A stretch of DNA of 44,950 nt from the NCBI GenBank assembly GCA_000708835.1, contig DF237213.1, positions 78,233 through 123,182 on the forward strand, given 5' to 3'. Shown here in pieces: positions 12,359 through 38,826 of this stretch. The stretch comes from Klebsormidium nitens. Taxonomy: Eukaryota > Plantae > Klebsormidiophyceae. Made by a program: the position numbers and the translations under genes. The notes beneath the pieces were generated by a model. That model worked only from the letters and a program-made list of their open reading frames with translations, ran no database searches and was not told where the DNA came from. Numbering within the stretch: the stretch's first letter is position 1; every line of letters starts with the position of its first letter.

Positions 12359-15300
12359 CTAGTGAGGCACTCGCAACCCTTTCGTTTGTAGCACCCTTAG
12401 ATAGGCCTCTTTCAGATCGTGGAACTTGCTTTGCGCCTCTCCCGAAGCTAGCAACAATGCGTCACTCCCCTTCGAAGTGCGGCACCCGTCTCGCTTTCCC
12501 TTTTCTGCGTAGGCTGCGTCCTTCGTTTGAGGAGCCTTCACAGCACGTGACGTCACTGGTGCCCAGGCCCAAGGTTTGGGAGGGCCGTCGAGGCTGCTGT
12601 CGCTACTGCTCAGACTCTGATGCGGAACACCCGCTTTCAGCGACGCCGTCGCCTGTACTTCCCCTTTTTCTGGAACGCCCGTCTGCCTTTCTCCAGCCCC
12701 AACTGGAACCCTCGCCTCCGCTCTCCCCTCGTTTGACGTCAGCGGCTCCGCGAAACTGATGCTCCGAGCAGTGGGCGCTCCCGCGTACCCGGGCCTCGCC
12801 TTGCCCGCCTGCGAACCCTCAGGCCCCCAGTCGCTTGCTTGTTCCTGCTTGTCTGGAGAGGTGTCCGGACTGGGCGTCAAGAACGACACACTGTCTTCGT
12901 CCGTTTCCTGTTCCAAGCACGACTCCGCCCCCGCACGCTGCCTCCCCACCCCGCCTTCTTGACCCCGCAAACCGTGCTCAGAACCTCGAACCAACCCCTG
13001 CGCTCTTGCAACAGGGCGACACCTGTCCGTAGGCGATTGGCCAGCCTCCCTCGTTCGAAGCCTGGTCTGTAGCGTCTCAAGCTCCCTCGTTAGTTGCAGC
13101 ACCTGAAAACGGCAATCTTCGTACTCGGCTTGCGCAGTCTCCCGCTGCGCGCGCTCTTGCTCCGCGCTGCTCTCAGCTTCGGTCAGCCGTTTTCGAAGTG
13201 CCACCACTTCTGCCTGGCACCGCACCTGCAAAGTAAGTGGACTCAGTAAAATGGAACTCGCTTCAGCTATCAAGTTTTTGCTGGATGCTTCAAAGGGTGA
13301 ATCAGAGTCGAGACAGGAGGGAAGCCCGGCATGGTGCAACGGACCTGTACTTAGCTTTAGTCTGACGGGCCAGAGGGCTTCGCCGCTCCTTTCTCGTTGT
13401 TTCGTTTGGATGGGATGTCTAACGAAGGTGCTTGCTAGAAGTAGGCATCTCTGGCCGCGTCAATATCCAGAACGCAAACTTCCAACACGGACAGAGATTG
13501 AAGTGAGACGACACAAAGGCCTCCAATGTGCGAGGTCGATTGCAAGAGCAGCCCCATGTGCACCGTAGAAACGACCCGGGAAAGGTCGTCTGCTCTCCTT
13601 CGAGAAAATCTTTAGGAACGGCCAGCAACCGCACCACACGGCTGCACTCCACAACAATCACACGCAATCTTGCACAGGCAACAACTCGTTGCACAAAGCG
13701 CGGTTCGCACCTGGGCCGCCTCGGCTGCCTTGGCCGCTGCCTTGGCCTCCGCCAGCTCCCTCCTCATCCGCGCCCCCGCCTCCCGGGCCCTCTCCCCGCC
13801 CGCTTTCTCCGCCTCCCTCTCCCCCGCTAGCTCGTCCGCTCGCGCACGCAGGGCCTTCGCCTCCCTCCGCGCCGATTCGAGCAGCGCCGCACTGTCTTTG
13901 GCAGCGGTCTGGGCGGTCTCCAGGTTGCGTGCAAGGGCCTCGTTCTCTGCCTTCTGGAACTTGACACGTTGCAGCTGCAAGGGAAATGACGGCTCAGCCC
14001 CAGGTTCTCATGAACCAGCAACTGCAGAGAGGAACCAGGGAAACGTCTCGATGCACTCGACAAAAATAGCTACGATATCGTCTGACTGTATACTTCGCCC
14101 TTGAAGACCGTTCTTCGATGGCGACAGTTAAAAGGTTAGATCCAGGCGACATATGATCCAAGAGCCCGAACGACTCTCGACAGCTTCGTGAATGCGTCGA
14201 CTGCTGTTTGAGCCCGGACAAGGAGAATGGTTCGTTTGGCGACCCTGAGCTGCCCTGGGCCCGGGGGCTGTTAGAAGGTGCCTTTATGGCTCGGAGTCAA
14301 CTTTACCGGAAGACACGCTTTGCTTGTGTCAAAGACCATGCTCATCAAGACAAAGAGACTCACATAACACAAAGCAAGATGGAATGCCCCAGTAGGTCCC
14401 CTCCGAGTTCAGACCTAGCCAAACCCGCGAAGCCTGACCCAAAACCATTGGGGCCGATGAGGAGCTGCGCACCGTTCGATGGTCAAAAAGTGTGCATCTG
14501 ATGGCTGTGACCTTGCCATCTGACCACGTGGAGCTCTGGTCAAACTGCATACGTCAGGAAAGGCACCATCACACGCTCACTGCACACAGAAACAGGTTTT
14601 GAGATGCTCAAATATGTATTTGAAGGCTAAGCAACAGCCCCCAGGCGCAGGGTCCCCAAAAAAACTACTCTCCTTGTCGGCCCTCTGTTGTCAATGGAAA
14701 GTGGGCCAGGCATTAATTGCCGTTGCTTTCGGATTTACATACCCTATGTTACCGAAAAGAGACAAGAACCAAACGCCCACCAGCGCCTTGTTGGTCTCCT
14801 GCAGCCTGGCCTCCCTGCGCCGCGCCTCTCTCAGCTGCTCCTCTCCTTGCGCCGCCCCCTCCCGGAGCGCCCTTTCCGCGACCAGCACTCGACTCTCGAA
14901 CACCACACTAGCAGCGCCCGCCTCTTTCTTAGCCTGGTCCCTTAGTGCCGCTATTTCGGTCTCGAAGTCGGCTTCCAGGTGTTGGAGCACGCGGGCATGC
15001 TCCGCTTGCTGCTGCTCCAATCTGACCGCTAGTGATGTCGCTGCCCTGTCCTTCTCGGAGACTTCTGCCTCCAAAGCCTGCAGCGGAGAACAGCATTGCA
15101 GCTCAGAATCGCACCGCGCAGAATTGGAAGTGCTGCGGAAGCCGAGGGTAACGACCTGTCAAGGACGCATGACCAGATCGACTGTACTCCAGCAGGTACG
15201 TTGCTCGGAGAACATAAAGAAGGCGAGTAAAGCGGAAATCGCCTGAACAAGTCACCATTTCAGACAAGGTTACTTGCTAATACATGCCACAGCTCCCAGC

Positions 15301-16873
15301 CTGCAGACTCAAATGAGCGAGTGGTCAAAGAGTGCACTCTAGCTATGAGCATGAGCACGTTGTTTTTGAAGAATATTGCGAGCCAGGTAAGGTGGCCTCT
15401 TATCTGTAGAGAGACCCAAGCGCTGCACCTACTTTCACCCTGTACTGCCCACTGGCTGCTCACTGTTGGTCCAGTACTGACCTGCACGCGTGTGCGCAGT
15501 TGCTGGACCTCCCCAGTCTTTTCCTCCACTTCTCGCGTTAGCCTCGATATTGAGTCCTCCCAACGAATCTCCCCCCCGCTGCTTCTCTCCCGAGCAGTCA
15601 GTGGCACTTCGTCACCACTTCCGGTGTTTCTTGCCCCCTCTTCCGTCCTCGAGCTCGGGTGTCCCGTCTGCTCGCTTCGCACTCGCTTCTCTTCCACTTT
15701 TCCGATCCCGTCCCGCTCACTGCCCAATCCCGGGTCACCTGCTGGGCGTTCCACAACAGTGCTGCTCAATGTGAGGTTGTTTTCGACCTCTTCCCCCGTA
15801 ACTGCTTCGGCCCTGGCGCTCGGCACCTTGAAAGCTACTTCAGAGCCCTTCCCGTCACGAGAAGCCTCTCGAGGCGCAGCCGGACCTTCCTTGATTCGCT
15901 CCTCAGAAGGGGCCACTTGATGTATCTCTGGATCTTTTCTTGGTAGCATGAGTTGGACAATCGGCTCTACAGGACTCAAGCTTTCCACTTCCTCGTATCT
16001 GGGCGCAGGTTCATGCTTCCAACTCCCAACACCAACAGGTGTGTCTCCTCCGTGGCCCGCTCCCAACCCAGCCAAGCTGCGCTCCAGCAGCGCTGCCAGG
16101 GACTGCCACTCAGACTCCAGCTGGCCCCCGGCAGGCTGAACCCCCGCTTGCCGAGCCCCCTTCCATTCGCCATCACCACCAGCAACAGAGTCCAGGTAGT
16201 CCAGGTCGGGTATGCCAGGAAAGGCACTCGCGTCTTCGCCAAGAAGCGAGTCCTCCAGAGCAATTGCCTGCAAGAACGGGTCGTCGGCAACAGGCTCGGA
16301 AACTCCCGTTGTGTCCGTCCAGCGAAGCGGGTCCAATTTACCGAATGCACGTTGCAACGGGTCGGGAGGCACTTCCCTGGAGGAGCCCCCTGGAGCTCCT
16401 CCCTGCCCTTGCTTCTCCCCTCGCCCGCTTTCCCCCCTCCACCTGCGCGTGCGCCCCCTGCTCTCCTTCCGTACCCGCCGCTCAGCCCTGAGCTGCTGCA
16501 CCAGCTTGTCCGACTCCGTCAAACTCCTGAGCACCGCCATCTGTTCCTTGACTTCGTCAGAGCTGCCGCCAGGCTTCCGCGACCTGGGGGGGTCTCTCTC
16601 CGGAGGGGAAAAGCTGTAGCCTACGTGCCCTCCCCAAGCTCGCCCCTCCCGGCTGGCCTCAATTCCATCCTGAGGATTGATACTGGACCAGGAGGCAGTC
16701 CGAAGGGCTGTGGTAAATCCTTTACGAGGTTGCTTCTGTGGTTCAGCTGCGCCGGGGTTTGGCATGGGCGACGGGAGACTGCTGCTCGAGGTCTGCTCCT
16801 CGCTGTTGAGAATCTCCACCAGCTCGGTGACGTCAAACTCCCTGGCTGACCGCACCCGCATCCTTCCGCCCAT
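12359..16873 (-). CDS. Large coiled-coil / low-complexity protein of unknown function; ~4 exons, ~940 aa
   Basis: Exons 16873-15482, 15077-14781, 13974-13711, 13225-12359 join in phase 0 with GT-AG sites. Central exons are E/A/R/Q-rich heptads; termini are S/P/G-rich. No domain recognised. The 5' start and possible extra exons are uncertain. Confidence 0.7.
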
Positions 16874-19192: not shown

Positions 19193-20245
19193 TAATGCCG
19201 ATCCTGGATTGCTTTCAAATGGGAATATTGCGAAATTCTCCGAGTATGACGATACTTCAAGCTATGTACCGGTAGTTGCAGTGTTAAGACTCAATCGCCT
19301 TTCAGATACACAATAACAGACCACAGGCTTCCCTCAAAATCTGACACCGCACTGATACGCTGAAACTGATGTCATCATAGCATGTCAGGCGGCAGTTTTT
19401 GTCAGGCTTCGTGAATCCGCATCATGATCATGGTCATGCAAATCTTGAAGGCGGCATGGCCGATGATGGTTTTACCGTATTGCATGCGCGTTCTTCAGCT
19501 TCCTGGCATTGCACTGCATGGCACTCTTCGCCCTCTACGTAGCTCTCTAGACGGTCCATCCTGCAGGTATTTCAGGTAGCTGCATTTGCTGCCAAAGCCA
19601 ACTGACTGCAGCCTGCTGCTGCCGCTCATTCTGCTTGCAGAGGGGTCAACCGGCGCGAAGCCGCCAAGAGTGCGGTGGGGGCCGTTTCGGCGACCGTCGG
19701 ACAGCTGTTGGTCCGCTTGGCATCTTGCGATGCTGAAAGCTTGGGGCATGAGTTCACTTGCAGCGCCCCGTGTGGCAGGCTGCTGAACTGTTTTGAGAGA
19801 AGGTGAAGAGAAGGTGAGGGCTCTTGTTTCTGGATCCTTGCATGTCTTCTATTGGTACGGTCCGAGTCAAAGCTGCATCAGATGCCTGTGCAGTATCGGA
19901 AGCAGCAAGGGCGGCCTTGTAAGTGGGTATTGCTGGCTCCGATGGAACGCATATACAAGTGAACATGCTTCAGCAAGCCTTCTGTCAAGAGCTTTCCAGC
20001 TTCTGTTTAGGTGTCCATCTTCCCCACTCGACACGGGAAGGCATGCCAGCATAGGCGCTGCTTCCATGAATTCAATGCTGAGTTCGGCAAAGTTGACTGG
20101 TGACAGTCTTGTTTACCATTGAGATCCCTGTCACTTTAGTTCCTGGTGCCGTTGACTATGGCAGTTGAACATGAGGCTGTACTCAGAGCTGTTGCTTACC
20201 TCTGTCTGCTCTTTTGTGCAACAGACTTGTAGCCCACTCTTTTTC

Positions 20246-23200
20246 ATGGGATCATATAAGGATGGGGCGGAAGAAGTGGTACTTGCAAAGAGGAAGGGCA
20301 GCCCAGCAGAGGGGGTGGGCCTTCTTAACGTAGCGGATGATCGGGTGGACCTACAGATCAAACCATCTGAACTCAAGGGCGCGCGAGCAGAGCTCTCTGG
20401 AGTACGTGCCCAGTCTAGTAGCACAGACCAGGCCCGGCCGTACGAGAGGCATGCCTTCAGCGGCTACTTCAACAATCCCGTGCCTTCCACTTCACAAAAC
20501 TTGTCCCAAAGTAGTCCCCAGGTCGAGCAGCCCCCTAGCCAAGTTTCCTCCGGCCATCCCCTGAAGTGCCCCAAGGTGGACTGTGCAGGGCCCTCAGGCA
20601 CTGCACCGTTTGTTTCAGAACCTGCCGCCTCTAGTTGGGAGCAGGCTAGGCCGGCCCCCAGCCCATCGTGCCCCCCCTCCACGTCGAATGCTGCCACTCA
20701 TTCCGCAGTGAAGAAAATGTACGAGATTGATTGTCCAAGTAGCCGGGCGGCGCCTGCTGGCCGTGGCGCTGGCGTAGAGCGGCGCAGCATTGTCCAAACG
20801 GGGAGGGGCTTGGCCGCTCCTTCCGGCCCCCCATGGCAGTGGTTCCCGCCACGGGCCGCTCAAGCAAACGGCCCTCTAGTGCCGGAGCCTCCTCCCCTCC
20901 CTGCGGAGCTTCTGGAAGAGGAGGGGCTATCCGCATGTCTAGAAGCAGCAACGTGCGCCCCCAGCGCAGTGGAGCAGCTCGGATCTCCCTCTTTAGCTTC
21001 GTCGGATCTGTTGGGTTGGGTAGGCCACGGCAAAGCGGAGGAGGGCGATGCCGCGCTCAGCCTGGAGGACCTGCCGCGAGTGCTTCTGGTGGCGGTGCTG
21101 GCGCACCTCCCGCTGCCGCGCGATGTCGTGGCATTTGGCGCCACCAGCAGGGCTGCAAGGGAGGTTGCCAGCGACGCGGCACTCTGGAAGGCGCTTTTCG
21201 CAAGCAGGTGAGCTAACAAGTCTGTTCCAGCAATAGAGGCCCAGAGAGGTCAATCGGCCCGCTCGCTTCCTTCCCGCCATCCTCTCTGTACATTTAATTT
21301 TCCGTTGCCACGTGTCCTCATTCCAAGCCCCAAAGCTATCGCTTTTGATTACCATCTTTAGCGCATCGTTGATCAATAGGCAACGTGTCTGTACAAGCGG
21401 TCTGTGTGACATGTTGCACTGTGCTGCAGGTGGGGGCTCCCTGCTGCCCTGTCCGCCCAGCACAACTCGGAAGTGAGCCTGCAGCAAGAGTATGCATCCC
21501 GAGAGCGCTTTCTACGGGAGCTGCGGTCGAGCCCTCTCCTGGTAGGGGCGCTTACGGAGCTTGAAGCAATGCAGGTGTGCCGCCACCTGTCGGGGGCGCT
21601 GGATTTGCTCACAGTCGACTCCCTGGCAGTCTGCCAAGCCCACGCAGCCATACTGCTCAAGGTGAGGTGCCTTTGCGTTGTGCGTCCACTGGGTTTGGGG
21701 TTTGGTCGGATTTAGGCAAATTTGAGGGCCTTTTGCGAGGAGGTTACCCTGGGGTTCCACTGCTCAACATGAGGGAAGAGCTGTTTGATCTGTGTTCTCC
21801 TGACATTCATTCCCGAAATCGACTTCGCAATTTGTTGTATCATCAAAATTTCTGTACACAGCTGCACGGTCAGGGTCATACCTCGCCCCAGTCACCTCCG
21901 GCTAACATTTCCCTTGTTCTGCTTCAAAGATTCAGCCGTGGGCTTACAGGATTGCACGTGGGTCTGATTGTGTCCTGTTAGGACACTCTTTTCAGTAATA
22001 CTGGATATTTTAATGTTCAAAAATACCCACCCCCCACTTCTCTCTGCAGGAGGTGGATCTCTTCCTGGGCCTTCTGCACATCTTCCGCCGATCACCGTCC
22101 CCGGAAGATGATCCTGCATACGCTGAGGCGTACAACCTGGCCTGTGCAGTCTACGGGACCCTCGTGAGGCGCTGTCAAAAATTGGCGGGAGCACGGTTGC
22201 TGAGGTGCAGCGCTCCGACTTTTACTTCTTAGTTCGGACTCAAGAATACAACTCCAGGCACACGGTCTGGCCACACTTAATACAGGCATCCTGCTGAGCT
22301 TGCTTGTATCTTTACACAGATTCTACTAGATCCTTTCATATTACATTCCTTTACTTTTCCCCGTACTCCTGCCTTTCCCTCTGCGGGCGGCTGGATGTGT
22401 TTGCCCCTGATAGCGCCTTACGGGGCTCTCCTTCCATTGCAGGCGTGAGGACGGGCGGTCCCCTCGGCTGCAGGGCTCGAGCACTCCGCAGTGCCGCTTC
22501 TCGTGCGAGAGCATTTTCGCGCACTTCGTCCAAAACCTGAAGAAGCCCAGCATGTATGCGGGGCCGCTCGCGCTGCCGGACCCTGCCGGGCCGCCGTCGG
22601 TGGTGTGTCTCGAGATGTGCGAGGCGCTGCTGCCGCACATGTACCTGCTGCCCGTGCAGATCTGGGATCTCTCCACGCCCATCGCCGACTGGAACGGAGT
22701 GGTGAGTGAGCAGGAAGGTCGTCGCCATCCTCGTGTCGATTGGGCAGATATGCTTTGTTTCTGAGCAGAAGCCTGAAGCACTTCGGGATCCGTACGTAGA
22801 CCCAGCGCTTTGGACCGGGGCTGCTGAACCAATGCGACAAGGGGTTCATGTTGAACTTAATTGGGAGCAGAAACGGTTCTTCTTTTCACTAGCGCCAGTG
22901 CATCGGGTTGAGTGCTGGGCTCTTGGTCCTTTGGACAAAGTCAGTGCCCCGACTTGGAACGAGAACTCATCGAGCCGGGCAGTGACTAGATTGCACATGC
23001 CAAATCTTCTCCTTCTGCTGTCCCAGAAGGTCCGCAGTAGGGCAGTAGGCCGAGCCCGCTTCTCCGTCTCCTTTCTCCTTCTGACTGCCCGTCCCCACAG
23101 GAGTGGCCCCGCTTCAGCGAGGAGCCGTTCCGGCGGTGGCTCCTCCCGGACTGGCGCGCGCAATTTCCCGGACTGTGGCACGGCTACTACATGTTTCGCA

Positions 23201-26047: not shown

Positions 26048-29000
26048 CTAGCTGGACCCGCAGCTGCTCCCACAACTGCTGCCCCCCCCGCAGCTACTCC
26101 CTCCCGAGCAGCTGCTTCCCCCCCCGCCACAGCTGCTCCCCCCTCCGCCACAGCTGCTCCCCCCTCCCCCACAGCTGCTCCCCCCTCCTCCGCAGCTGCT
26201 TCCCCCCCCACACGAACTGCCCCCCCCGCCAAGTTCCCGCAGAGGCCCCGCACGACCCGCTGGCCCCACATGCGCTCGCCGCACAGCCCGCCCCCGCCGA
26301 GCCACAGAGGCCCGCCGCGGTGCTGCACGCGCCCGCGCCATGGTTGTGGTGGTGCTCCACCGAGCCGCAGCCTCCCCCTACACAGCACACCGCTCATTCC
26401 GCTTAGCCACATGCCCATCCAGAAAGCACAGCCACAGCGTCCGGAATACCCGGACCTCAGACTTTTCCCCAAGGGCTTTCTAGACACTGCAGAACGGGAC
26501 GACGCAACGCAACAGCTGTAAGAAGGTCAGGCCTTAGCCAACAGACTAACTCGTAGCTTAGACGGGATTTTAAACGGGGGACTCACCTGACGACGTGTCT
26601 ATGAGGAGCGGCGTCATGTACCAGAGCGGGAGGGAGTTATCGGTGCCGCCGCTTGACGAGGACGACGTCTGCCGGGTAGTGGTCCCTCCGTGGGGCCTGG
26701 AGTACGCCACCGAACCTGATCAAAGGAAACAGGCAGACGTGAGCAGGAGCGGGTCAGGTGAGAGAAGCCCCATGAGAACCCCAACATCTGGCTGAAGTTG
26801 CGTCCGTCGGAAAAGGGGTTTGATCTCGAACAAAGTGGACCGACAACGAGGGACCAGTAAGAACACCCCAGCAAAAGGGCACAGGATCTCCTGAAGGTTT
26901 GCCGCTGCTCACCCCACTCATCCACCGGGCGGCCGCCCCTCTTCTTGGCCGCCTTTTCGGCTGCTCGCTGCGCCTTGAGTACGCGCAGTTTTGTGCGACG
27001 GTCCGGAGCGGCGGGCGGCGTCAGGTCCTGCGCGGCCTGGGCAAGGCACGTGCCCAGGAGGGCCACCAGCGGAATCCGCTCCGTGGGCTGGACCTGTGGA
27101 GCGGAATCGGAGATGGTTGTAGGTACTGGCACGCTTGGAAGATAAGGTGGCGCCTCCGTCGTTCTCTCCGCTCGATGCAGAAGAAACCCCAGCGTGTTTT
27201 TTGGCTCGTCAATCAGAACGGGAAGAGTAGGCTGTTGACACCTGTTACGGCTGTGTTGCACACAGATTCAGGAGTAGTACGTGACAGAGAGTCAAACAAC
27301 AGAGTTCTGTCAGGACTGCACGAACGGCAAGAGAAGAGGCAGCTCGCAGCCAGCAGGGCGCGCCTGACCTCCATGATGCCCCGGGTCCAGTTGAGCAGTG
27401 CGGTGGCCTTCCCCCGGGGGTGCTCCGCAGTGTAGCGCACCAGGGTGAAGAAGCCGGCCTCCTGGGCGGGGGACGCCCCGGGCACCGCGTACTCCAGCTG
27501 GCGGCCCTCGATCAAAGCCACCTGCAAACGCACCGGAGAGGAGCACATCACTCGCCGCAATGCTGCACGCTGATGTCACACACTGGGAAGAGACTCACGG
27601 ACAGATAGTCAATGGTCAGAGTTGCACCAAAGAACCATAAGAGTGGACATATTGACACAACTCCTCCGTTTTGTTTTTAAAGCAAGAGGCACAAACGGGC
27701 ACGCATGACAAAGTTGTCGCATTCAAGGCTGAAAGAGGGCAACCAGACTGTGGAGACCTGGCGTATCAACTAAATATGCATTACTTACCGGGGGGCTTTG
27801 CAGGGGCTGCTTGCGCGCCCACGTGGCGACCTTCGGTGTGAGCGCTGCGGTGAGGGCCCTCTCCCCGGACGCCTTGAGCCGCACCGTCAGCTCGTACGTC
27901 ACGCTCGAGTCATCCGTCAGGCTGATGTCAGCAACGTACGAGGCTGCCTCGCCGTAGGGGGTGCCGTACAAAGTCCCGGGGGGGAGGAGCTCCTGGGCCT
28001 TCCCTACGACGACACCTGGCAGAGCAGAGACAGCGAGAGTGGTCAGAAGAAGCGAAGACTGACGTAACGAGAACCCGAACGCACAGACCCATCTGCAGAT
28101 TTCCGACGTGATAATGGGCATGTTAAGTTGTCGGCTTTGTGGAAAATGGTGAAACAACCCGAGCGGCGACGCACCGGGCGTGTTCGACGCGGCCAGGTTG
28201 TGCAGCTGGTGGAGGCGCTGCCCGGGGGAGACTGCAACTGGGGACTCTTGGGTCTTCCTGTCTTTTCGGCCCGTCTTGGCTCTGAAGAGAAAAGGTGCGA
28301 AGTGTTTAGAATCAGCAGGGATTGCAAAGCCGATCCAAGTCTCGTGCCCAGACCTGCCATCGTTGGCACAAGCTAGGAGACGGGCAACGTAGGTCCCAGG
28401 CAACTGCCAAGGCATTTCTGAAGGTCTTGTCCTAGCAAGATTGGCAGAAACAAACGATGCAACCTGTGTCTGCTGTGCAAGGACAAAGTCGAAAGAGATT
28501 GCATATCTGAAAGCAACTCAGAGAACAAGAAGATATCGCAACCACTCACAGTGTGCGCATCACTGCCACGTCAGCCCCCGTGTGGTCCTTGACTGCGCGC
28601 GTGACCCATCTCCCGGTGCTCTCCGCGCCAACGGGCTCTCCGTTATCGTCAGTCAGCGTAGCCCGCGGCCACGTTCTCAGCAAATACGGACCCTGCTCCG
28701 GGGGGGTGATCGACAGCGCCACTCGCAGCGAGGGGGGCTTCTCCCCGTGCTTGAACTTGCCCGTCGGGCTGAGCAGCAACATTCTCTCGAGCACATACCC
28801 CGGCTGTTCCAAGACCTCCGGCCACGTCACCTGAGCCGCCGCCAGCAGCTTGTCCGATTTGAGCCCGGAAAGAATTCCGGCGGGGCGATCCCACACCTCG
28901 AATACGAGCCCCCCCGTGCTCATCTCCACCTGGAACGACGCCGCCTCGCGAGGCCACCCGCTTGCAGCCCCCGCCAGTGCGCCCGACGTCTGCATGCAGG

Positions 29001-31381
29001 GCTTGGAGAGCTTGGCCAGCGGGCGCGCCTTGACGTGGATCACCCCCTTGTGGCGCTCCAGGTTCTTGGCTTCCGTAACCACGACGCAAACCTGGCAGAC
29101 TGACCGGTTGGTAAGGGCGGCCTGTAGGGCTCCGTTATGGTGGGAAGCGTGGGCTGCTTTTGCCAAGGGGGGGATGGGGAATGGTGCGGGAACTGGGAGG
29201 GGAGGTGGGGCTTCGCCCAGGTACAAGGTGCCGGCCCGCTCGTACGGGACTCCGTAGAGCGCAAGCCAGGTGTCGGCGGTGGACTGGAAGGACGTGTCCA
29301 GCTTGGCGCCCGTGCTGCGGTCCTGGTCGCTGCAGCAGCAGGGACGTTTCTGATTTTAGTTTATGGCCTCAAGAATGAGTGCACGAAAAAGTCCGCAGTC
29401 AGGTCAAGAGGTTGCTGCTACCTTAAATCAGAACCAACTACCAGAAAGCAGATTCGGGACACCAGATGGCAGTGGATCAAACCCAGGCAGTGCGCATGAT
29501 CTGAGCCACAAAGCATGTGCCTGATATCAGCAAAACGGCAGCCGAAGCATTCTCAACTTCCAGCCGTTAGCATTTCGAAGTCTTTGAAACGATTTCTCTA
29601 AGGTGCGACCTGTGCATCAATGCCCATCCTCACTCACGTGTCATCGTGGTCTATTAGCTTGCCCATGACGTTCTGACAGTCTTCCGCGTATGCGAGGGGG
29701 CACAGCTGATGGGCATGCCACATCAGATCCACGTCGTACGTGGGCACACAGAACAGCCCGCTGCCGCGCGTGCGCCGCATCAGGTGCAGAAACATGCGGT
29801 ACCGCGCCAGGCTGCCCTCCAAATAGCGCAAGTCCTGCAAGTGAAGATGGGGAAAGACTGTGTCCCGCTGGCGAGAACGGCAATAAGATGGACAGTGGTT
29901 GAGAGAGAAGGACTGCCTGCAATTGGTAACACTGGCAGGCAGGGTGATGTTCAGGCGGTCGCAAATCCGGATATCACCCCCGTTCACCCCAATTTTGCAT
30001 TACAAGCCTGTTGCTGAGAGGATATCTACATGTCTCCTCCATCCTTCACATGCCCTAGTTCTGACAGGCTCCGTTTGGAGGGACGGGTTCCCTGATGCCC
30101 TCGGATACCCAACAGGAAACAACCCCTTCCCCTCCCAGTCAATCACAAAGCCAATTTGCAGAATATACAACAAATTTGATTCAGGAGGGCACATTCACTT
30201 GCACACTTACCAAAAAGCCTGGGCGGTTGACCTGGTAGAAGAAGGACGTTTGCCGCCCCATGGCCGCCACCAGCTTCAGCTCAATGCTGCCCACCTCCGC
30301 TGGCTCTGCGCTCCCCGGAACAGGGTCCCACGGCTCATTGGGGCACTCCGATGCCCACAACGACATAGCGGTGCCGAAAGCGAGGGTGTCGTCGGAGATG
30401 AGGGGGTGGTCCAGTGTGCGCCCAAGGAGGCGCCCGCAGTCCTGGGCGTACATCACCTGGAGGGAGGGAGTAAGGAGAACATGAGGGCAGGCGGGAATGG
30501 AACACAGGAAAAGTAGACAGCTTGGAGGGAGGGTGCAACAAGTTGGACTTGCGGCTCAGCCTTTGGGAGTATGTGTGTTTCTGCTTGTTGACAACTGCAG
30601 ATTCAGGATGCTCACACATAGGGCTCACACATAGGCAGAGCAACTGGTTGTTGGAAACACTGGCATTGGACAACTGGAATAAGTAAGGTAGAAGTTGGCT
30701 TACTGGGTTGAGCATATGGCAGTGCCAGGCCCAGTGCACGTCCAGGGGGGGCAGCAACTGAGCGCCCGGCCCCTGCTTGGCCAGGAGGGGGAGCCAGCAA
30801 TGGCGGTACCTGCGCAAAGTCGCAATCTTTGAGGCTAAGGGTCCGTATAGGCAGGACAGAACGGCCCACATTCACTGTCACCAACGTTGATTGCCGGGGG
30901 CATGCGCAATGATAGAGGGTCTATCCAGGACACAATGCTCCCTACTTGTTTATGCACTCAAGGACAAGAGGTAAAAGCAAAGCCCTTGATGGGTAGGACT
31001 GGGATTACCAAAGGGGCTGCATAGAAAGGCCCCTGCCAAACTGTGGACTTCAAACTCTGTTCACTGCCTATACACGTAAACAAAATGACTCTCTTACATT
31101 CCAATAATTGGGCACTCATATCTACATTTACCACAAAAGAATTCCTTCCATTGGGACTATGCAAACCCGCAGAGTGCGTCTATGGAGGCCTCATCCTCCA
31201 GGATTGTGCCCAGGTCTCACCTCCTTGCCGCCTGTTGCGCTCCTGCAGGAGTGTGCAGCTCGGGCGCATTGTCCACTGCAGACAGCATTGCCACCTGGCA
31301 CCGTGCTGCTGTCAGCAGGTCGGCCGATAGCGGGATGGCCTGAGCTGCCGCCCCTTCCCGCTGCTGATCATCAGTGCCCAT
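26048..31381 (-). CDS. GRDP: Glycine-rich domain-containing protein (GRDP / DUF1399 family); 11 exons, ~870 aa, with an apparent 1-nt frameshift in the last exon
   Basis: Exons 31381-31221, 30809-30704, 30456-30211, 29834-29638, 29329-28550, 28281-28175, 28015-27789, 27521-27369, 27093-26913, 26715-26587, 26377-26048. Motifs RYRHCWLPLL, PPLDVHWAWHCHMLNP, RQTSFFYQV, CVPTYDVDLMWHAHQL, DHDDT, GRQLEY..FFTLVRY..HPRGKATALLN. The GGGGSSC tail is out of frame by 1 nt at a G8 run. Confidence 0.9.
26060..26232 (-). repeat. Coding minisatellite of ~18-21 nt units encoding (GGGGSSC)n
   Basis: Plus-strand units resemble CAGCTGCTCCCCCCTCCGCCA, about 8 imperfect copies. Confidence 0.9.
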
Positions 31382-33628
31382 ACTTACTTACCTCCTGGTC
31401 CGCAATCAAGTAAGGTGGAGCGATTGCAGGCGTGCCTTGCGAAACAATGGCATAAGATGGCGATCTAAGGCGATTATATGCAGCGGCTTCTGGATAGCGG
31501 TAAGCAAAGCTCTTGAGGAAGTCCGTAATCCAGGACGAGCTCCCTTACTGTTGCAGAGAACAAGCAATTACCCAGTGTGGAACTGTGGAAAACAAAGCCT
31601 ACAAAATTGCTGCTGACCGCAGCTCGTCTAAAGTTGCCCTTCACTACGAAGAATGGTAGAAGACAGCTCAAAGAAACTTTGAAGAAGCATCAATCTTGCG
31701 GCTGTTGGACGGGCACTGCTAACAAAGAGACGTGCTACGGTACCCACCCTGCTTCTCCAATATGCTCGGCTTTCTCTGCCCGTTTCTCTGCTGCCTGAGG
31801 CTGCAATGCTGCATCTAGGCTACCCAGTTTCAGTACTGGTAGTTCCAACTCTGCGCGCGCGAGGACCCCGCCAAGTCACTCTGGTCAAAGTTGGTCGTGA
31901 TCCATGTTTCTTGCTCCGAGCAGGCTGTTCAATGTAGTGTCAATGCCTTATGTTTATGGCCTGCAATATCGCTTGAACACTCACATTGACTCACATGAAC
32001 GGGTTGCTCGGTCGCCGTACATGTCATCGGACTCGAGCAATCGAGTCAAGGGGGACCCCCCGACATGCCCGCTTTCAAGTTTCGACCCTCGATGAAAATC
32101 GGATCAACTTTGAACGGTTGTATTGGCACTGTCCTCAGTAGCTGCCGATAATGGTTTCGATAGGTGAAATTAGAGTAACGAATGCATCCCACACTGGCCA
32201 ATTCTAGTTGCTCTAGCAACTGCTTGTTGCAATGAAGCGCGCCAACCTCCGCATCAATTCAGGCCAGCGGCCAGCCTGACAATTGGCAACGTGAAGGCTG
32301 ACACAGACAGCAGCAGGGACCAGGAGCGGCTGTGCATTGATCCAGCTGATAGGTCTAGCTTGATTTCACTTTGCCAATACCTGGCGGCCTCAGGATTTAT
32401 GTATCGTAGGCGTGCATTACGGAGATTCCAATTTGTCTTTAGCGGGTTGTGTCAGGAGCTGTCTGGCGGCGGACAATTGTACGCTAGGAAAGGGGCGTCA
32501 TGAACGCGCCATGGTGGGATGCACTGAGGAGACATTGGGCAGAGAAGGTAAGCTGAAAAGGCGTGGTTTCTGGGCCTCAAACAGAGGGGCCGTAAGGAAA
32601 GTGGACCATGTCTGAAGGCTGAGCCGCCAACGCTCTCCCCTTGGAGTCTAAGTAGCATGGCAATTACCAGCTGCTGCGTAAGGACTGGGGCCTGAAGCAA
32701 TCAAGCGTAGTTGGGCGGCTGGGAAGGGGCAATTGGGATGCTGCAATCAGTGGAAACGGTTGGCCACGTCCTGGCGTTCCGTACTCCGTTGCTTACCCAG
32801 AGTCTCTGGCAGCCTGAATATTTTGCGTACATTTGGTTTGGAAAGCCCAAGTGTCGCTTCGTTTGCAAGCTGCTCTCACAAAGGGCACTGGATCTGGTTG
32901 AAAAGTGACCCCAAGAAACCATTTGTTCAGCATAGAACATCTTCAAGCTGCTGTCTCCCTTTTGACCTTTTGCACTTGGGACACAATGCACAGGGGCACT
33001 CAAAGGTCTCCGGAAACTTTTGGAACGACCTAAGAATTGTGTCAGCTGCATTTAAAACCGGTTCCGCACCTCGTGCTTATGATCAAGCTGATCGGCCGCA
33101 GTCCCATTGTGGCACTGTCACTGCTCGCGTCATGCAGCTTACAAGTGCTCCCAAAGGCCCACATTGGCACCCGAAAGGCTTGACCACCAGTTATCAGGCC
33201 CTTAACATCCAGGGGTGGTATGACTTTGACTATAAAGGTTGGGAATATCACGGATCCTCGCTGCCAGTAGTGACATCAAACCGATCGGAAGGTTCCAAAG
33301 ACCGCTTAAAATGTGCTCCCAAAGGGCTCTGACTTCCTAGTTAGAAGCGGCACACAATTGATGGGTGAATGACAGTCCCTAACTAGTATCATTTGTACAA
33401 TAAGACGATTTCTGATTTGACATGCCTCAGGTTAATCCAAGGCGTGGGGTATCTGTCAAGTCTGACTATCAGGGACTTCACATTGTGAGTTTACTTGCGC
33501 GCGATGTTCACACGCTTCAATCCTTAACAAATCTACCAAAATACATCAGGGGACACTTTTTCTTGAGGGCCAGTTTTCACGGCCATACCCGGCATCTCCT
33601 CTGAACCCCCACCCGCTGGCCCACTCAG

Positions 33629-36600
33629 GTGCTGGAGCTCCGCAGCAACTTGCACAGTGGTGGCCCCCTCTCCCCCGTCACAGAGAGGGCCTCCAGTCTT
33701 GACATTCCGCCCGCTCTCGTCCACTCCGAAACCATGCCGCCGCTAGCGTCAGTCACATTCACCCCCCCGAGAGAGCCAGAGCGGGCGGCAGCAGAAGCCC
33801 CCAGTAAGAAGTATGCGGTGAAGACGGGGGACTGCTTGTACGGCATCAGCCGCGAGTTTGGCGTGGACGTCAAGTGAGTGGGATTGTCGAAGTGACGCTT
33901 CAAAGGGGGTTGTAGCGGGTCGGGCTGGTAGAAGGTGGATGGGCAGAAGATTGCGCAGGCTTTCTGTCACATCCAGCTTGTGAAGAGCCCTGGTAATAAG
34001 ATCACTTTTGGGAACATAGGCAGGTACACCATGGGAGCTCATTGCCAAGGGTCACCCTTGACTTCTGTACTTTGCATGATTCCACTGGCCTCCAATTTCT
34101 CTTCAAACACATAGTAGTAGCTTCCAGTCCTGGACCATGCTGCAAGCGAACTGCCTTGCTCATGTCGCCTAACCGTAATGTACCAGAGTGAGCCCCCCAA
34201 GATTGAGCTGCCAGAACACGTCTTTGTCTCCTGCCTCTCCATCCTCGTTCACTATTCGCGCCCCTCACTCCTCTCATCTCGCAGGACGCTCCTGGCCTCA
34301 AACCCGCACCTGTCCAACCCCGACAGCCTGCCCCTTGGCCTCACGCTCTGCGTGCCCCTCCACTTCACCCCTGGAGTCCCCAACTCCAGCAAGCTCGCGC
34401 GCATCTCCCTCCCTAGCCCCACGCCCCTCCCGCGCCCCGCCCGCCCACAGATCAACTCCGCCAAGGTGTTGCCGCAGAGTGCCCAGCAGGCAGGGGCCGC
34501 TCGAGCGCTGCAGATGCGCGTGGCGGCGGTTGCGTTTGCAGTGTGCGGGAAGCTGTTGCTGGGCAGCGGCAGCGTAGGGGTGCACAAATACAAGGTGGCA
34601 AGGGGGGACACGCTCGCCAAGATTGCGGCGCGGCACAAGACCAGCGTGGCAGCCATCAAGCAGGCCAACAAGCTCAAGAACGACGTCATCATCCCCGGCA
34701 GGTAGGCTTTGGTGCGAGCTCGTCTTTGGAGTTTGAAACACCCGGGATGAGGCAGAAATCCGTTTTCGTTCTGGGCTATAATTCGCGAATGAGGTCACTT
34801 TTCGCATTGACGGGTTTGCACATGGTTGCTATTTAAGCCCCAAAGTTTCGTGAGCAGCCCCCACAGCCCAACGGCGATGCCGTTCTCCTCAGACATTGTA
34901 GCAGAAGCCCTCACACTTTTGCGTAGTGCAGAAAGGCAACCACTCCCAAGGTTTCATGTCTCGAGCATGCTCCTTCCTCCACCTGGGCCTTTTCCTTACC
35001 CTCTCGCGTCTTCTGCAGGACGCTGACGATTCCGTCCTCCGCCCCACGGGCGACTCTCCAAAAGGCGTCGTTGGCGGAGCGCGAGGCGGCCATGTACGGG
35101 CTGCGGCAGCAGAGCAAGGAAATTTTGGCGCCCATCTCGCCCAACCCGGTGTTCCAGAAGCACGCGCCGCAGCGCCGCGTCGTGGTCCGCCCGGGGGACA
35201 CGCTCTCCGAGATCGCCAAGACGCACAGGTGAGGGCGCTAGGAGGACTATTAAACGACTAACCCGGGACAATTTCAAAGCGCCTCGCTTAGTGGGTTGGC
35301 GGGGCTGGCTTGGAGTCCCTGCTCGAAAGGGGCACTCGACAAAACGTGGCTTACAAGACGGAGAAGCTCTACCTTTTACTCCGAGCTCTTGCTGTGCTCA
35401 GTCCCCCACTCCATATCTCCGTGCAGAATGAGCGTCCAGGAGCTGATGCGGCTGAACAACCTCAAGGGCTTCGGCATCTGCGCGGGCGACATCCTGGCGC
35501 TCAGTCCAGGTAAGCCCCAGCAGCGCTCCGAGGGACCGCACCCGCTTTCATGATACGTCCCTTCGACGCATCTGGCTGCAGCCATGAGGAGGCAATTATA
35601 TACTTGGCCCTTCTGCATGAACCAAATCTCGATCTCCGCCTCGGTTGCTGGAAAGTCTTCTTCGAACTTAGAAGACGTCCATGAGAGTAGAGAAGAGAAC
35701 GTCAGTTCCCGTAAACTCTGGGCTGCATCACACTGACTGTGATTTCCTGGTGGCGCAGCTCCGCGCATGCCCATTGAGTCGATCCGGAAGGGCCCCCGCC
35801 GCTCGCGGATGTACCTCTTCTCGCGAGGCTGGGACGTGTGCACGGCGCAGAGGAAGCCTGGCGTGGGAGGCGGCATCGTCAAGCAAGGTGAGTTTCACTC
35901 AAGAGCCGGCTCAAGGGGGCAGCGACCTTCGTTGCCCTTCAGCCGGATGTGAAAGAACTCTTTGATGAGCACAGCTCTATGTTCTTTTCTTGCACAATCG
36001 GTGAGTCGTTGTGATTACCCAAGTCGCGCAGCTCCATCTTCCGCTCTGTGAAAATTTTGAATTGTCTCCGTTGTGCCTCACGTTCGTCAAGCTCGTTCTT
36101 AAAAATGCTGCGTTTCGCCCAGACGTTTCGGTTAAGGGCTCTCTTATTGATTTGGGATTTGGAACGTTGCTTGCTCGCAGCCCGCTGGAAGCAGCGCAAG
36201 ACCAAGCCCTTCAACGACTGCTGGCGCTTCAACTGCCCCCTACAGAGCGGGTGAGCCGCCAGTAACCCGCACCCGTTCCCTATCGGTTGTGCCGTTTTTG
36301 CCAGTTTCACGATCTATTTGAAAGCGAGCAAAGCTGCTAACACCCCAAAAGTCGATGTTGCTTCGACAGGCCGACCAGCAATATCTTCTTTGGGCTGCAC
36401 CACATGACAGTAGCTTGGCATCCATGTCGACCACCCTTCAGCCCGATCCACTTCGATCGCGTTCAATCCCAAACGGCATCGAACAATGGTCAGGCGCTTT
36501 TCCAACCTTGCCCTTCCGCTGTCGACTGCGTCCGCTGAGCGCCTTGGTTCATTGCTGCCGCAGGTTCATCTCGAGCCCGTACGGTCCGCGCAAGCTGGCG

Positions 36601-37625
36601 GGCCAGCGGCGGAGCATCCACTACGGGGTGGACATCGCGGCCGACACGGGCACGCCCATCCTGGCCGCGGACCGGGGCGTCATCGCCAAGGTCGCGCGCC
36701 ACTTCTGGGACACCGACGGGTGCGCGCGCGTTCACCTTTTCTGACTGACTGCCACGTGACAGCCCGCTCGAGGCTCGAAGAGTTCTGTTCTTCCGGTGTC
36801 TTTTAGGAGAACCTCCGCCAAAAAGTGGTTCTTAATTAGGCGCCAGGGCTATTTTGAACCATCGAAGGCTGGGTTCAAAGGTCTGCTTGCGGCTATGAGA
36901 GACAGGGTGGGAGACAGCGCTGCTTCTCGCAGTCAACAGCCCATCTCAACAGCCCAGCTGCCCGCCGCCTGTGCGTGTCTCATTTCGTGCGCCTGTGCGG
37001 GCAGGTACGGCAACTACGTGGACATCATGCACTCGGGCAACTTCCTGACGCGGTACGCGCACTGCCAGTCGCTGCTTGTGCGTGAGGGCCAGGTGAGCGG
37101 CCCCTCTGTCCACCGAGCGCCCCGTCGACTCGTGCTTCGAGCAGGACTGGAGCAATCGTTGGAGTCCGCAACCGATGCCTTGTTTCGTCCCTAGAGTTAG
37201 ACTCTGGGTTATCTGTTTCGCTCAAGTAGTCCCCGCTCGTGTGGTGCAGCGAGTTTCGAGGGGCCAGGAGATCGCCACAGTGGGAGCCACCGGGAATGCT
37301 CAAGGACCACACCTCCATTTTGAAGGTAACGCGCAGTCTCTCTCGATTCCAAGTTGTGAAGAATTGGATGTGTATGACAGTGCCCAGGCCGTGTGTTGGA
37401 AGCATCACCGATGACCTGAATAGCAGTTCCTTGCCCCGGCAATCTGCATAACAAGCAGCAATATCTCCAGAAGTCAATGACGTCAATACAAGCTGGAGAG
37501 AAGGAGAAATTCAGATTTTGGGGGTTTCCCCAGCCGGTGCTGACAGCGGTGTCGGTGAATCTGTGTTGGCAGTGCGCAAGGAGGGCAAGACGGTGAACCC
37601 CGCGCACTACACCCGCCTGTGCTGA
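33629..37625 (+). CDS. DipM: 3xLysM + peptidase M23 (LytM) protein, DipM/NlpD-like putative plastid peptidoglycan hydrolase; at least 10 exons, at least 508 aa, 5' end unresolved
   Basis: Exons 33629-33873, 34285-34701, 35019-35228, 35427-35509, 35759-35887, 36181-36250, 36564-36719, 37005-37092, 37250-37325, 37573-37625, all GT-AG and in phase. LysM1 YAVKTGDCLYGISREFGVDVKTLLASNP...LTLCVP; LysM2 YKVARGDTLAKIAARHKTSVAAIKQANKL; LysM3 VVRPGDTLSEIAKTHRMSVQELMRLNNL. M23: ISSPYGPR, HYGVD (HxxxD), GYGNYVDIMH, TRYAH, GPHLHFEVR (HxH), VNP. Orthology to DipM is inferred. Confidence 0.9.
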
Positions 37626-38826
37626 CCTCCACCACCCGGTGCCCCGTCCGCCCATTCTTTTCGGCTGCATTCAAAAGCTTGAGTCTGCCGGTAGCTGCTA
37701 GGATTATGTCCCGTGTCTGGTCCCAGGTCAAATGTGCGTCTCTCGGCAAAGATAGGGTGGATGTTGCTAGTCGTGCTGGTTAGGGCTCGTGTGGCTCCAA
37801 CGCCAGGTGGTCTTACAAGAAATAAACCCTACATATAGTCCGTTGTACTCTAGATAGTTGTAAGAGATCGAGGCCTTGCTTCTGTGCTGTGCCTGGTGGC
37901 GACTCTGCTTCCTTCAAGGCAGTCAAATCCGGAATAATCCAGCAGCGAGTGTCCCGTTGAAAAGCCAAGTGGCTCGAGAAAATGGTCAAGCGTTTGCTTG
38001 TGGGTCGTTGGGCCAACCCTTGAACTCAAGGCAAGGTTAGATTTGACTCTTATATGGTGCAACCTCCTAAGTAGTTAGTCGCTTGCAAAGGTCTTGACTC
38101 AAACAATACCATGAGTGCTTTCAATGGACGCATTATCAGCTTGTCGGATTAGCGATGCGTTCATGGGATAGTAAACATGCTCCGTGTTCAATGTGGTTAC
38201 GATCAAGTTTTCAAGCCGACCGATACTGTTTGCCGTGAAGCGCTATGCATGATACCATCTGTACTTCGCGGCATTGACGTCACCGTACCGGTGGCACATG
38301 GTCACATTGATCACGGAGAATTGCGGAGTTGCGGAGTCAAAAAACAAATTCCCGGCCGCGCCGGAGACCGTGCTCCACGGCCATGGTGGCTAAGGGCGTT
38401 AATAAATTGGAAGTTACCATCACATGGTGGCACTCATGCCATGACGTGATCATAGAGCGCGTGGGACCGTTCACACTCACGCGCAAACTTTGCAGGGCAT
38501 GCACATATTGATCTGGTTGAGAGTACACTGTATACCTTAGCATCATTATCAGCTGAAAGTTACCACAACGGATATCCTGCTAATGCATATGATGAGCCCG
38601 TTCTGGCGGATTGGCTCAACATCATCACATGGGCCTGGCGGCTGGTTGAGTTGCCTGGCGGCCGCCGGCCCGCACGCCGCGGCCGCTCTGCTGCCGCGGC
38701 TGTGGGGGGCCACGCACTAAAACTTTTCAGCAGTCAAGGCGTGCTGTAGCAACCCTTTTCGCCCGGGGGCTACTGGGAGAAGTCATCAGCAGATCGCCGG
38801 AAACTTAGAAAGTGCAAACATGCAAC

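Follow-up and report, generated by a model that had tools for sequence, protein, structure and literature searches.

A spliced nuclear gene of Klebsormidium nitens that probably encodes a DipM-type plastid peptidoglycan hydrolase

The DipM proteins of P. patens (DipM1 and DipM2) and Cyanophora paradoxa are encoded by nuclear genes, combine LysM repeats with a LytM domain and occur in lineages that have plastid peptidoglycan. The moss and Cyanophora homologues clear peptidoglycan in zymograms by themselves, Cyanophora DipM localizes to the peptidoglycan layer where division takes place, and a double knockout of the moss DipM genes leads to giant chloroplasts (PMC4015805). Moss DipM1 has no predicted transit peptide, yet it is located at the chloroplast surface (PMC4015805). 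In the same work, an EST of Klebsormidium flaccidum with LysM and LytM domains (GI:372624497) was listed as "DipM" (Miyagishima et al. 2014; PMC4015805), and its closest match by BLAST was cyanobacterial DipM (PMC4015805). The listing went no further than the EST; neither the structure of the gene nor the complete protein, its residues or its function was described. Two further LysM-LytM genes of the moss (GI:168061355 and GI:168053993) are of non-cyanobacterial type (PMC4015805). For K. nitens, a toolkit for plastid peptidoglycan synthesis is reported (PMC13519894), as is labelled plastid peptidoglycan (Takano 2018).

Among bacteria, the DipM of Synechococcus elongatus and other LysM-M23 proteins start with a signal peptide, continue with LysM repeats and carry the M23 domain at the C terminus. 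A related architecture is seen in Caulobacter DipM, E. coli NlpD and EnvC, in which a targeting part made of LysM (or a coiled coil) is joined to a LytM fold that serves in the splitting of septal peptidoglycan; having lost zinc or catalytic residues, these factors work as activators (PMC10336132, PMC9662197). Active endopeptidases of the LytM type, such as ShyA and MepM (Vibrio/E. coli), LytM and lysostaphin, are recognized by an HxxxD motif, a histidine about 30 residues before HxH, and the HxH motif itself. The active members have accessory domains of other kinds and differ among themselves in the bonds they cleave.

The gene described here lies in a window of 44,950 nucleotides of K. nitens DNA, the whole stretch that was analysed. 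Between 33629 and 37625, ten coding exons with GT-AG borders, derived from the sequence and with their joints checked in RNA contigs, join into one open frame, and all nine predicted joints are carried exactly by RNA-derived contigs from four runs, each of a different study. The first-pass annotation, which had counted at least ten spliceosomal exons, is thus borne out on this point. Its placement of the gene start at 33629 has to be revised, because a tenth joint, 32547 to 33629, is present in RNA-type contigs of four of four runs; position 33629 is an exon acceptor, and the gene begins at least one exon farther upstream, with the exon that ends at 32547. The transcript in the RNA contigs has 11 exons and ten GT-AG introns (Table 1). 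The contigs extend to 38142-38147, one run having a loose A-run at 38142, and the poly(A) end lies near this position. The true 5' end is upstream of 32400, as one contig reaches about 154 nucleotides beyond.

Table 1. Mapped features of the LysM-M23 gene, in positions of the window
Feature	Position	Strand	Content and evidence
First mapped exon	32400..32547	+	Joint 32547 to 33629 in all four runs; frame runs on into the next exon
uORF, 34 codons, 5' leader	32399..32503	+	Sequence; region under RNA contigs
Intron 1	32548..33628	+	1081 nt, GT..AG, phase 0; RNA contigs and sequence
Exon 2	33629..33873	+	N-terminal part of the protein with the alternative start at ATG 33734 and the first LysM1 half; sequence, Pfam, RNA contigs
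Exon 3	34285..34701	+	Rest of LysM1, then a Pro-rich linker, the hydrophobic segment and the bulk of LysM2; sequence, Pfam, RNA contigs
Hydrophobic segment ALQMRVAAVAFAVCGKLLLGSGSVGV, aa 172-197	34505..34582	+	Directly before LysM2; Kyte-Doolittle mean 1.79 over 19 aa
Exon 4	35019..35228	+	Closing part of LysM2, a linker and the beginning of LysM3; sequence, Pfam, RNA contigs
Exon 5	35427..35509	+	Remainder of LysM3; sequence, Pfam, RNA contigs
Exon 6	35759..35887	+	Basic linker with Cys residues; sequence, RNA contigs
Exon 7	36181..36250	+	Linker and start of M23 domain; sequence, RNA contigs, HMM
Exon 8	36564..36719	+	N-terminal part of M23, HYGVD (H420, D424); Pfam, solved M23 peptidases
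Exon 9	37005..37092	+	Middle part of M23, catalytic His of RYAHC (H472); Pfam, ShyA alignment
Exon 10	37250..37325	+	M23 part with HLH (H503, H505); Pfam, PDB matches
Exon 11, coding part	37573..37625	+	End of M23 and stop TGA; sequence, RNA contigs
3' UTR	37626..38142	+	Ends at poly(A) site; RNA contigs

The coding sequence has a GC3 of 0.86 against an intron GC of 0.53, so its coding bias is host-like, and this bias together with the ten introns argues that the gene has been in the nucleus for a long time. Bacterial contamination or a dead pseudogene, to which only the bacterial-type domains point, has a practically negligible probability: all ten GT-AG introns are spliced in RNA contigs, the transcript has a poly(A) end, the frame is open over 524 codons at the GC3 given above, and the catalytic motifs are intact. 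Both readings were rejected on the strength of the spliced, polyadenylated transcript, in keeping with the initial view of the locus as a eukaryotic nuclear gene rather than a contaminant.

Two start codons can be considered. The spliced protein has 473 residues from ATG 33734 and 524 residues from the upstream candidate ATG 32500, which lies in the first mapped exon and leaves 16 codons there. GC3 is 0.77 in the part of exon 2 upstream of ATG 33734, which favours translation from ATG 32500. The uORF of the 5' leader ends on a TGA that overlaps this in-frame start codon (ATGA), and as a candidate element it could add translational control.

The domain architecture, three LysM domains followed by M23 as proposed in the first-pass annotation, was recovered both with Pfam on exon pieces and with HMMs on the spliced protein. 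Exon by exon, Pfam places halves of LysM (PF01476) on 33734-33871, 34286-34699, 35020-35226 and 35428-35508, of which 34286-34699 alone scores 58 bits (E 8.5e-16), and Peptidase_M23 (PF01551) on three successive exons, with model positions 2-28, 33-61 and 62-86 (E 1.6e-5, 8.1e-6 and 7.9e-8), the last of these on the exon 10 piece with 32.8 bits. On the spliced protein, HMMs built in this analysis from bacterial homologues detect three complete LysM domains at residues 77-122, 199-243 and 292-332 (iE 2e-10, 8e-25 and 9e-17) and a complete M23 domain at residues 396-520 (130 bits, iE 2e-42). The exon 6 linker gave no family match when searched in Pfam as an exon piece. Exon pieces also match solved M23 peptidases, namely ShyA, the Vibrio zinc peptidase 2gu1 and LytM, the exon 9 piece aligning to ShyA residues 297-324. 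The signal from the joined exons, domains and motifs is far above chance. Against the NCBIfam DipM equivalogs NF041208 and NF050804, exon pieces reached 14-23 bits, to be read beside whole-protein cut-offs of 740 and 900, since only pieces were scored.

Both zinc motifs are intact, as had been noted earlier, and the third catalytic histidine is present as well. Read directly from the sequence, HYGVD lies at 36619-36633 and HLH at 37310-37318; the former aligns with its counterpart in M23 domains of bacteria. H472 lies at 37060-37062, 31 residues before HLH, an arrangement like that of ShyA, MepM, LytM and lysostaphin. All five residues are thus in place; following the published roles, H420, D424 and H505 are assigned as zinc ligands and H503 and H472 as catalytic (PMC9662197). 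These residues align without gaps to those of bacterial M23 enzymes across the exon junctions, and a small insertion, RHFWDTDG, is found in the same alignment at the junction of the exons ending at 36719 and starting at 37005.

It could be proposed that the protein is mainly a LytM-type regulator, itself non-cutting, which would activate a second hydrolase, for example an Amidase_3 enzyme of the plastid. Activators of this kind, themselves without catalytic activity, are Caulobacter DipM, the namesake of the family, and E. coli NlpD (PMC10336132, PMC9662197). However, the five residues lost in such degenerate factors are all present in the alga, and the moss and Cyanophora homologues hydrolyse sacculi alone in zymograms (PMC4015805), which leaves a regulator without cutting activity very improbable. 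The contrast drawn at first pass with the many NlpD and EnvC proteins that lack the zinc ligands and only activate amidases stands for this copy. Because all five residues are present, the algal protein is, judged from its sequence, to be placed outside the degenerate LytM factors despite the shared name DipM, and catalytic capacity is expected in it by analogy with moss and Cyanophora DipM.

Compared with bacterial LysM-M23 proteins, the algal protein from residue 174 on repeats their layout (M-R, hydrophobic stretch, LysM, LysM, M23), and its M23 domain shares about 45-55% identity with many of the bacterial ones. In contrast to these proteins, it is longer at the N terminus by about 173 residues, a further LysM among them, and has ten introns, the RHFWDTDG insertion and a basic, Cys-containing linker. 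For its ancestry, homology searches were made with exon pieces. A phmmer search of 1.84 billion representatives with the 138-residue piece 34286-34699 returned a list filled by multi-LysM bacterial proteins, with no match covering the linker, so that neither an orthologue nor the protein of the window itself was among them; profile queries that combined bacterial scaffolds with exon pieces returned only relatives of the scaffolds (of Halanaerobium, Riflebacteria and Eremiobacterota types). The region of exon 36564-36719, searched in its stop-free ORF, returned no candidate, exact look-ups of exon and ORF translations and of one neighbouring ORF found no record, a metagenome scan with the piece 34286-34699 gave one unrelated LysM match, and the ESM Atlas gave only fragment clusters for a 51-residue piece. 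With exon pieces, no orthologue and no chromosomal cyanobacterial DipM was retrieved.

Scans of bacterial sequences returned M23 domains of broad origin. A bacterial genome scan with the piece 36565-36717 yielded 30 loci from many phyla, none cyanobacterial, but these were picked by exact 8-mers and form an arbitrary sample that is uninformative on origin. In a tblastn search of plasmids, the cyanobacterial plasmid M23 genes were not DipM-like and no closer than those of other bacteria. M23 domains from many bacterial phyla reach 85-117 bits, the top one being of Riflebacteria type (117) and a cyanobacterial plasmid M23 reaching 99.8, in biased samples that do not discriminate between sources.

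An alternative is that a LysM-M23 gene was acquired from non-cyanobacterial bacteria by horizontal transfer, as with the two additional moss genes, and that its product works elsewhere than in the plastid. It might, for instance, be secreted or anchored at the surface and serve against bacteria or in the scavenging of their walls. The existence of such genes in P. patens (PMC4015805) lends it some plausibility, as do the closest retrieved bacterial M23 domains, which are not cyanobacterial (with the sampling bias noted), and the internal hydrophobic segment, which could serve as a signal anchor. Nevertheless, no N-terminal signal peptide is found from either start codon (ATG 32500 or ATG 33734), the Klebsormidium EST reportedly matches cyanobacterial DipM best by BLAST (PMC4015805), and the alga has a substrate in its plastid. 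Altogether, a transferred gene with a role outside the plastid is considered unlikely, and a DipM-type enzyme of the plastid is the preferred reading.

The route by which a plastid DipM would reach its substrate is less obvious. The protein has no canonical N-terminal transit peptide, with nine acidic residues among its first 76, and shares the lack of a predicted transit peptide with moss DipM1. The hydrophobic segment is preceded by about 173 residues, made up of the leader, LysM1 and the Pro-rich linker. In alignments, bacterial homologues carry their signal peptide directly ahead of the first LysM, and by this resemblance the algal segment looks like a bacterial signal peptide that has come to be internal. 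It might be speculated that M-R-VAAVAFAVCGKLLLGSGSVGV (residues 174-197) is a retained ancestral bacterial signal peptide, the preceding residues being a eukaryotic addition, and that the relic acts as an internal export or anchor signal sorting the enzyme to the envelope intermembrane space; this full scenario is regarded as quite unlikely. If it were true, a relic signal peptide would be a sorting route to the intermembrane space, a compartment for which few signals are known.

The features of plastid DipM are found at this locus, namely a nuclear spliced gene, LysM repeats with LytM, and a lineage with plastid peptidoglycan, the last taken from the literature. Moss and Cyanophora DipM are backed by zymogram activity, location at the envelope or division site and the moss knockout phenotype, whereas the algal protein is known here from its gene and transcripts; its hydrolase activity, envelope location and role in plastid division would follow those of the published homologues. 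On this basis, the locus is probably the nuclear gene from which the alga makes its DipM-type plastid peptidoglycan hydrolase, an envelope endopeptidase. The 11-exon mRNA would be translated into a basic protein (about 57 kDa, predicted pI about 10), which would be delivered between the two chloroplast envelope membranes, to the thin layer of peptidoglycan that the alga keeps there. Its three LysM domains would bind glycan strands and the C-terminal zinc-dependent M23 (LytM-type) domain would cut peptide cross-links, so that the layer may be remodelled or split during chloroplast growth and division.

This role in plastid division, also proposed at first pass, agrees with the published interpretation of the EST from the same alga and of the moss and glaucophyte homologues (PMC4015805). 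The EST GI:372624497 has the same LysM and LytM/M23 content as the locus and is likely its transcript. The kind of gene is therefore already known and not a new case, and very probably this very gene is known too. What is added is a full RNA-supported gene model of a DipM-type hydrolase in a streptophyte alga with labelled plastid peptidoglycan, giving the 11 exons, the uORFs of the leader and both possible start codons, and locating the catalytic residues by their positions. The entry of such a protein into the intermembrane space, for which it has no canonical transit peptide, and the cyanobacterial or other bacterial origin of the gene both matter for understanding the way in which chloroplasts retained, and control, a wall of bacterial type.

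Exons of the LysM-M23 gene were called from GT..AG boundaries and frame continuity, judged by eye and then joined by script, and the ten coding exons form a single open frame of 473 codons ending at a TGA stop (37623-37625). Part of the window was detected in 20 public runs, 16 of which contain approximately 36-53% of its sampled words, about the share expected from exons alone. Contigs from four of these 16 runs, representing four studies, were mapped onto 32400-38300, and all nine predicted introns appear as GT..AG skips in every one of the four runs, while a further, tenth skip connects 32547 with 33629. RNA contigs end at 38142-38147, where one contig carries a loose poly(A) run. The locus is thus transcribed, spliced and polyadenylated. 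These skips bear out the exons of the intron-rich gene that the first-pass annotation had placed at 33629-37625, but not its start: 33629 is the splice acceptor at which the second mapped exon begins. Thin RNA contig cover is also present on five introns (contigs at 32520-33656, 33845-34314, 35910-36132, 36274-36518 and 37296-37600), and these low-depth contigs indicate minor intron retention or pre-mRNA. One retained intron (33874-34284) includes an ATG (34178) that shares its reading frame with the following exon.

Coordinates of the gene model, its leader and neighbouring reading frames
Feature	Position	Strand	Evidence or remark
Coding exons	33734-33873, 34285-34701, 35019-35228, 35427-35509, 35759-35887	+	GT..AG and frame
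Coding exons, continued	36181-36250, 36564-36719, 37005-37092, 37250-37325, 37573-37625	+	GT..AG and frame
uORF, 34 codons	32399-32503	+	Stop TGA 32501-32503 overlaps in-frame ATG 32500 (ATGA)
F-box-like ORF	20165-21208	+	E 6e-7
C2_GRDP ORF (C2 domain of glycine-rich-domain proteins)	28549-29226	-	E 2e-7

An ATG at 32500 in the upstream exon is in frame across the junction and would add 51 residues, giving a protein of 524 amino acids (57 kDa, pI 10.4), by which residues are numbered here. Because GC3 is 0.77 over the in-frame stretch 33629-33733, compared with 0.87 in the remaining coding sequence and approximately 0.55 in the leader, base composition favours translation from this upstream ATG, short of proof. 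The uORF, together with an out-of-frame leader ATG at 32511 in good to strong context, suggests translational control or leaky scanning.

As the spliced protein is without a reference entry, public libraries were queried exon by exon. Pfam placed LysM halves on four consecutive exons; its Peptidase_M23 profile matched three consecutive exons, at positions 2-28, 33-61 and 62-86. Weak NCBIfam matches to MepM, ShyA/ShyC, NlpD, ActS and DipM models all fell far under the whole-protein cut-offs, as expected for queries that are pieces. With HMMs built by script from bacterial homologues, the spliced protein showed three complete LysM domains (residues 77-122, 199-243 and 292-332) and one complete M23 domain (residues 396-520, 130 bits), so that the architecture of three LysM domains and M23 proposed at first reading is complete. 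Local alignment of the M23 domain with five bacterial M23 domains runs continuously over three exon junctions, which validates the splice model; it is gapped only once, where the algal domain has a short insertion at an exon junction (RHFWDTDG). Each LysM domain is split by an intron at a different domain position (junctions 33873/34285, 34701/35019 and 35228/35427; approximately profile positions 21, 38 and 16). Such differing sites are expected if introns entered an already repeated gene, and the pattern fits intron gain in an originally intron-less one. Its high GC3 and its ten introns show that the gene has resided in the nucleus for long, whether it arrived by endosymbiotic or by early horizontal transfer, which these features do not tell apart.

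In M23 enzymes, the HxxxD motif supplies two zinc ligands, its His and its Asp, and the latter His of HxH also binds the metal; catalysis falls to the leading His of HxH and to another His roughly 30 residues ahead of this motif (PMC9662197). The algal protein has H420-YGV-D424, H472 in RYAHC and H503-L-H505; the zinc motifs first reported as intact are therefore present, with H472 in addition. Its M23 exon pieces align with active enzymes such as ShyA and with further solved M23 peptidases. NlpD, EnvC and Caulobacter DipM, from which the name DipM derives, are regulators without catalytic activity (PMC9662197; PMC10336132), whereas the full residue set classes the algal protein as a competent endopeptidase rather than a degenerate LytM factor, its activity being predicted by this residue criterion. 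A partner-activating role alongside direct hydrolysis is possible.

A LysM plus LytM (M23) "DipM" homologue from K. flaccidum (EST GI:372624497) was listed by Miyagishima et al. 2014 (PMC4015805), the only paper in the open library searched that discusses DipM in Klebsormidium; the two others there with both terms mention them just in passing, one of them in its reference list. In the same study, recombinant Synechococcus, Cyanophora and Physcomitrium DipM cleared peptidoglycan in zymograms, the moss dipM1 dipM2 double mutant had few and large chloroplasts, and moss DipM1, which has no predicted transit peptide, was processed and found at the chloroplast surface (PMC4015805). For K. nitens, a peptidoglycan synthesis toolkit has been reported (PMC13519894), its MurE has been compared (PMC9434261), and plastid peptidoglycan labelling is attributed by later papers to Takano et al. 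2018. The DipM and plastid-division reading made at the outset is supported by its match to these homologues. Genes of this kind were known before, and this one has very probably been reported itself; given the 2014 listing, the finding is a correct rediscovery.

Moss also has two LysM-LytM genes of non-cyanobacterial type (PMC4015805), so cyanobacterial versus other bacterial affinity matters here. Searches with exon pieces returned only piece-sized or LysM-rich proteins, and profile queries on bacterial scaffolds returned relatives of those scaffolds. In a bacterial genome scan, loci were chosen by exact 8-mers. Against the algal M23 domain, domains of many phyla scored 85-117 bits and a cyanobacterial plasmid M23 99.8 bits, in a biased sampling. 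No usable alignment for phylogeny was obtainable by the 2014 authors (PMC4015805). On the Acaryochloris plasmids NZ_CP071720.1 and NZ_CP064924.1, genes annotated as VanY-type D-Ala-D-Ala carboxypeptidases also match the M23 N-terminal piece and may be VanY-M23 fusions.

Among the neighbouring ORFs scanned within the window, no link to plastid division was found; the F-box-like and C2_GRDP ORFs are probably exons of neighbouring genes. An ATG-started ORF of 537 codons (15263-16873, minus strand) matches no Pfam family, and the protein collection contains no identical entry for it. A C-rich tandem repeat at 26082-26227 (unit CAGCTGCTCCCCCCTCCGCCA, 21/42 nt) comprises approximately 5.7 copies of 21 nt or 3.6 of 42 nt.

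Most likely, the protein acts as a hydrolase in the intermembrane space, by a scheme drawn from its homologues from delivery onward. It would be delivered to the intermembrane space of the envelope, where the LysM repeats would anchor it on glycan strands and the M23 domain would cut peptide cross-links; the peptidoglycan layer would thereby be remodelled and split in chloroplast growth and division. Like moss DipM1, the algal protein is without a typical transit peptide, with nine acidic residues in its first 76. A hydrophobic stretch, MRVAAVAFAVCGKLLLGSGSVGV (residues 172-197, 34505-34582; Kyte-Doolittle 1.79 over 19 residues), starts with M-R and lies immediately ahead of LysM2, and bacterial LysM-M23 proteins carry a signal peptide at the same place, ahead of their first LysM. 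The stretch is possibly what remains of a signal peptide, put to use inside the protein for sorting or anchoring, or it may have no significance. The interest of the gene lies chiefly in its complete model and in how the protein is sorted.
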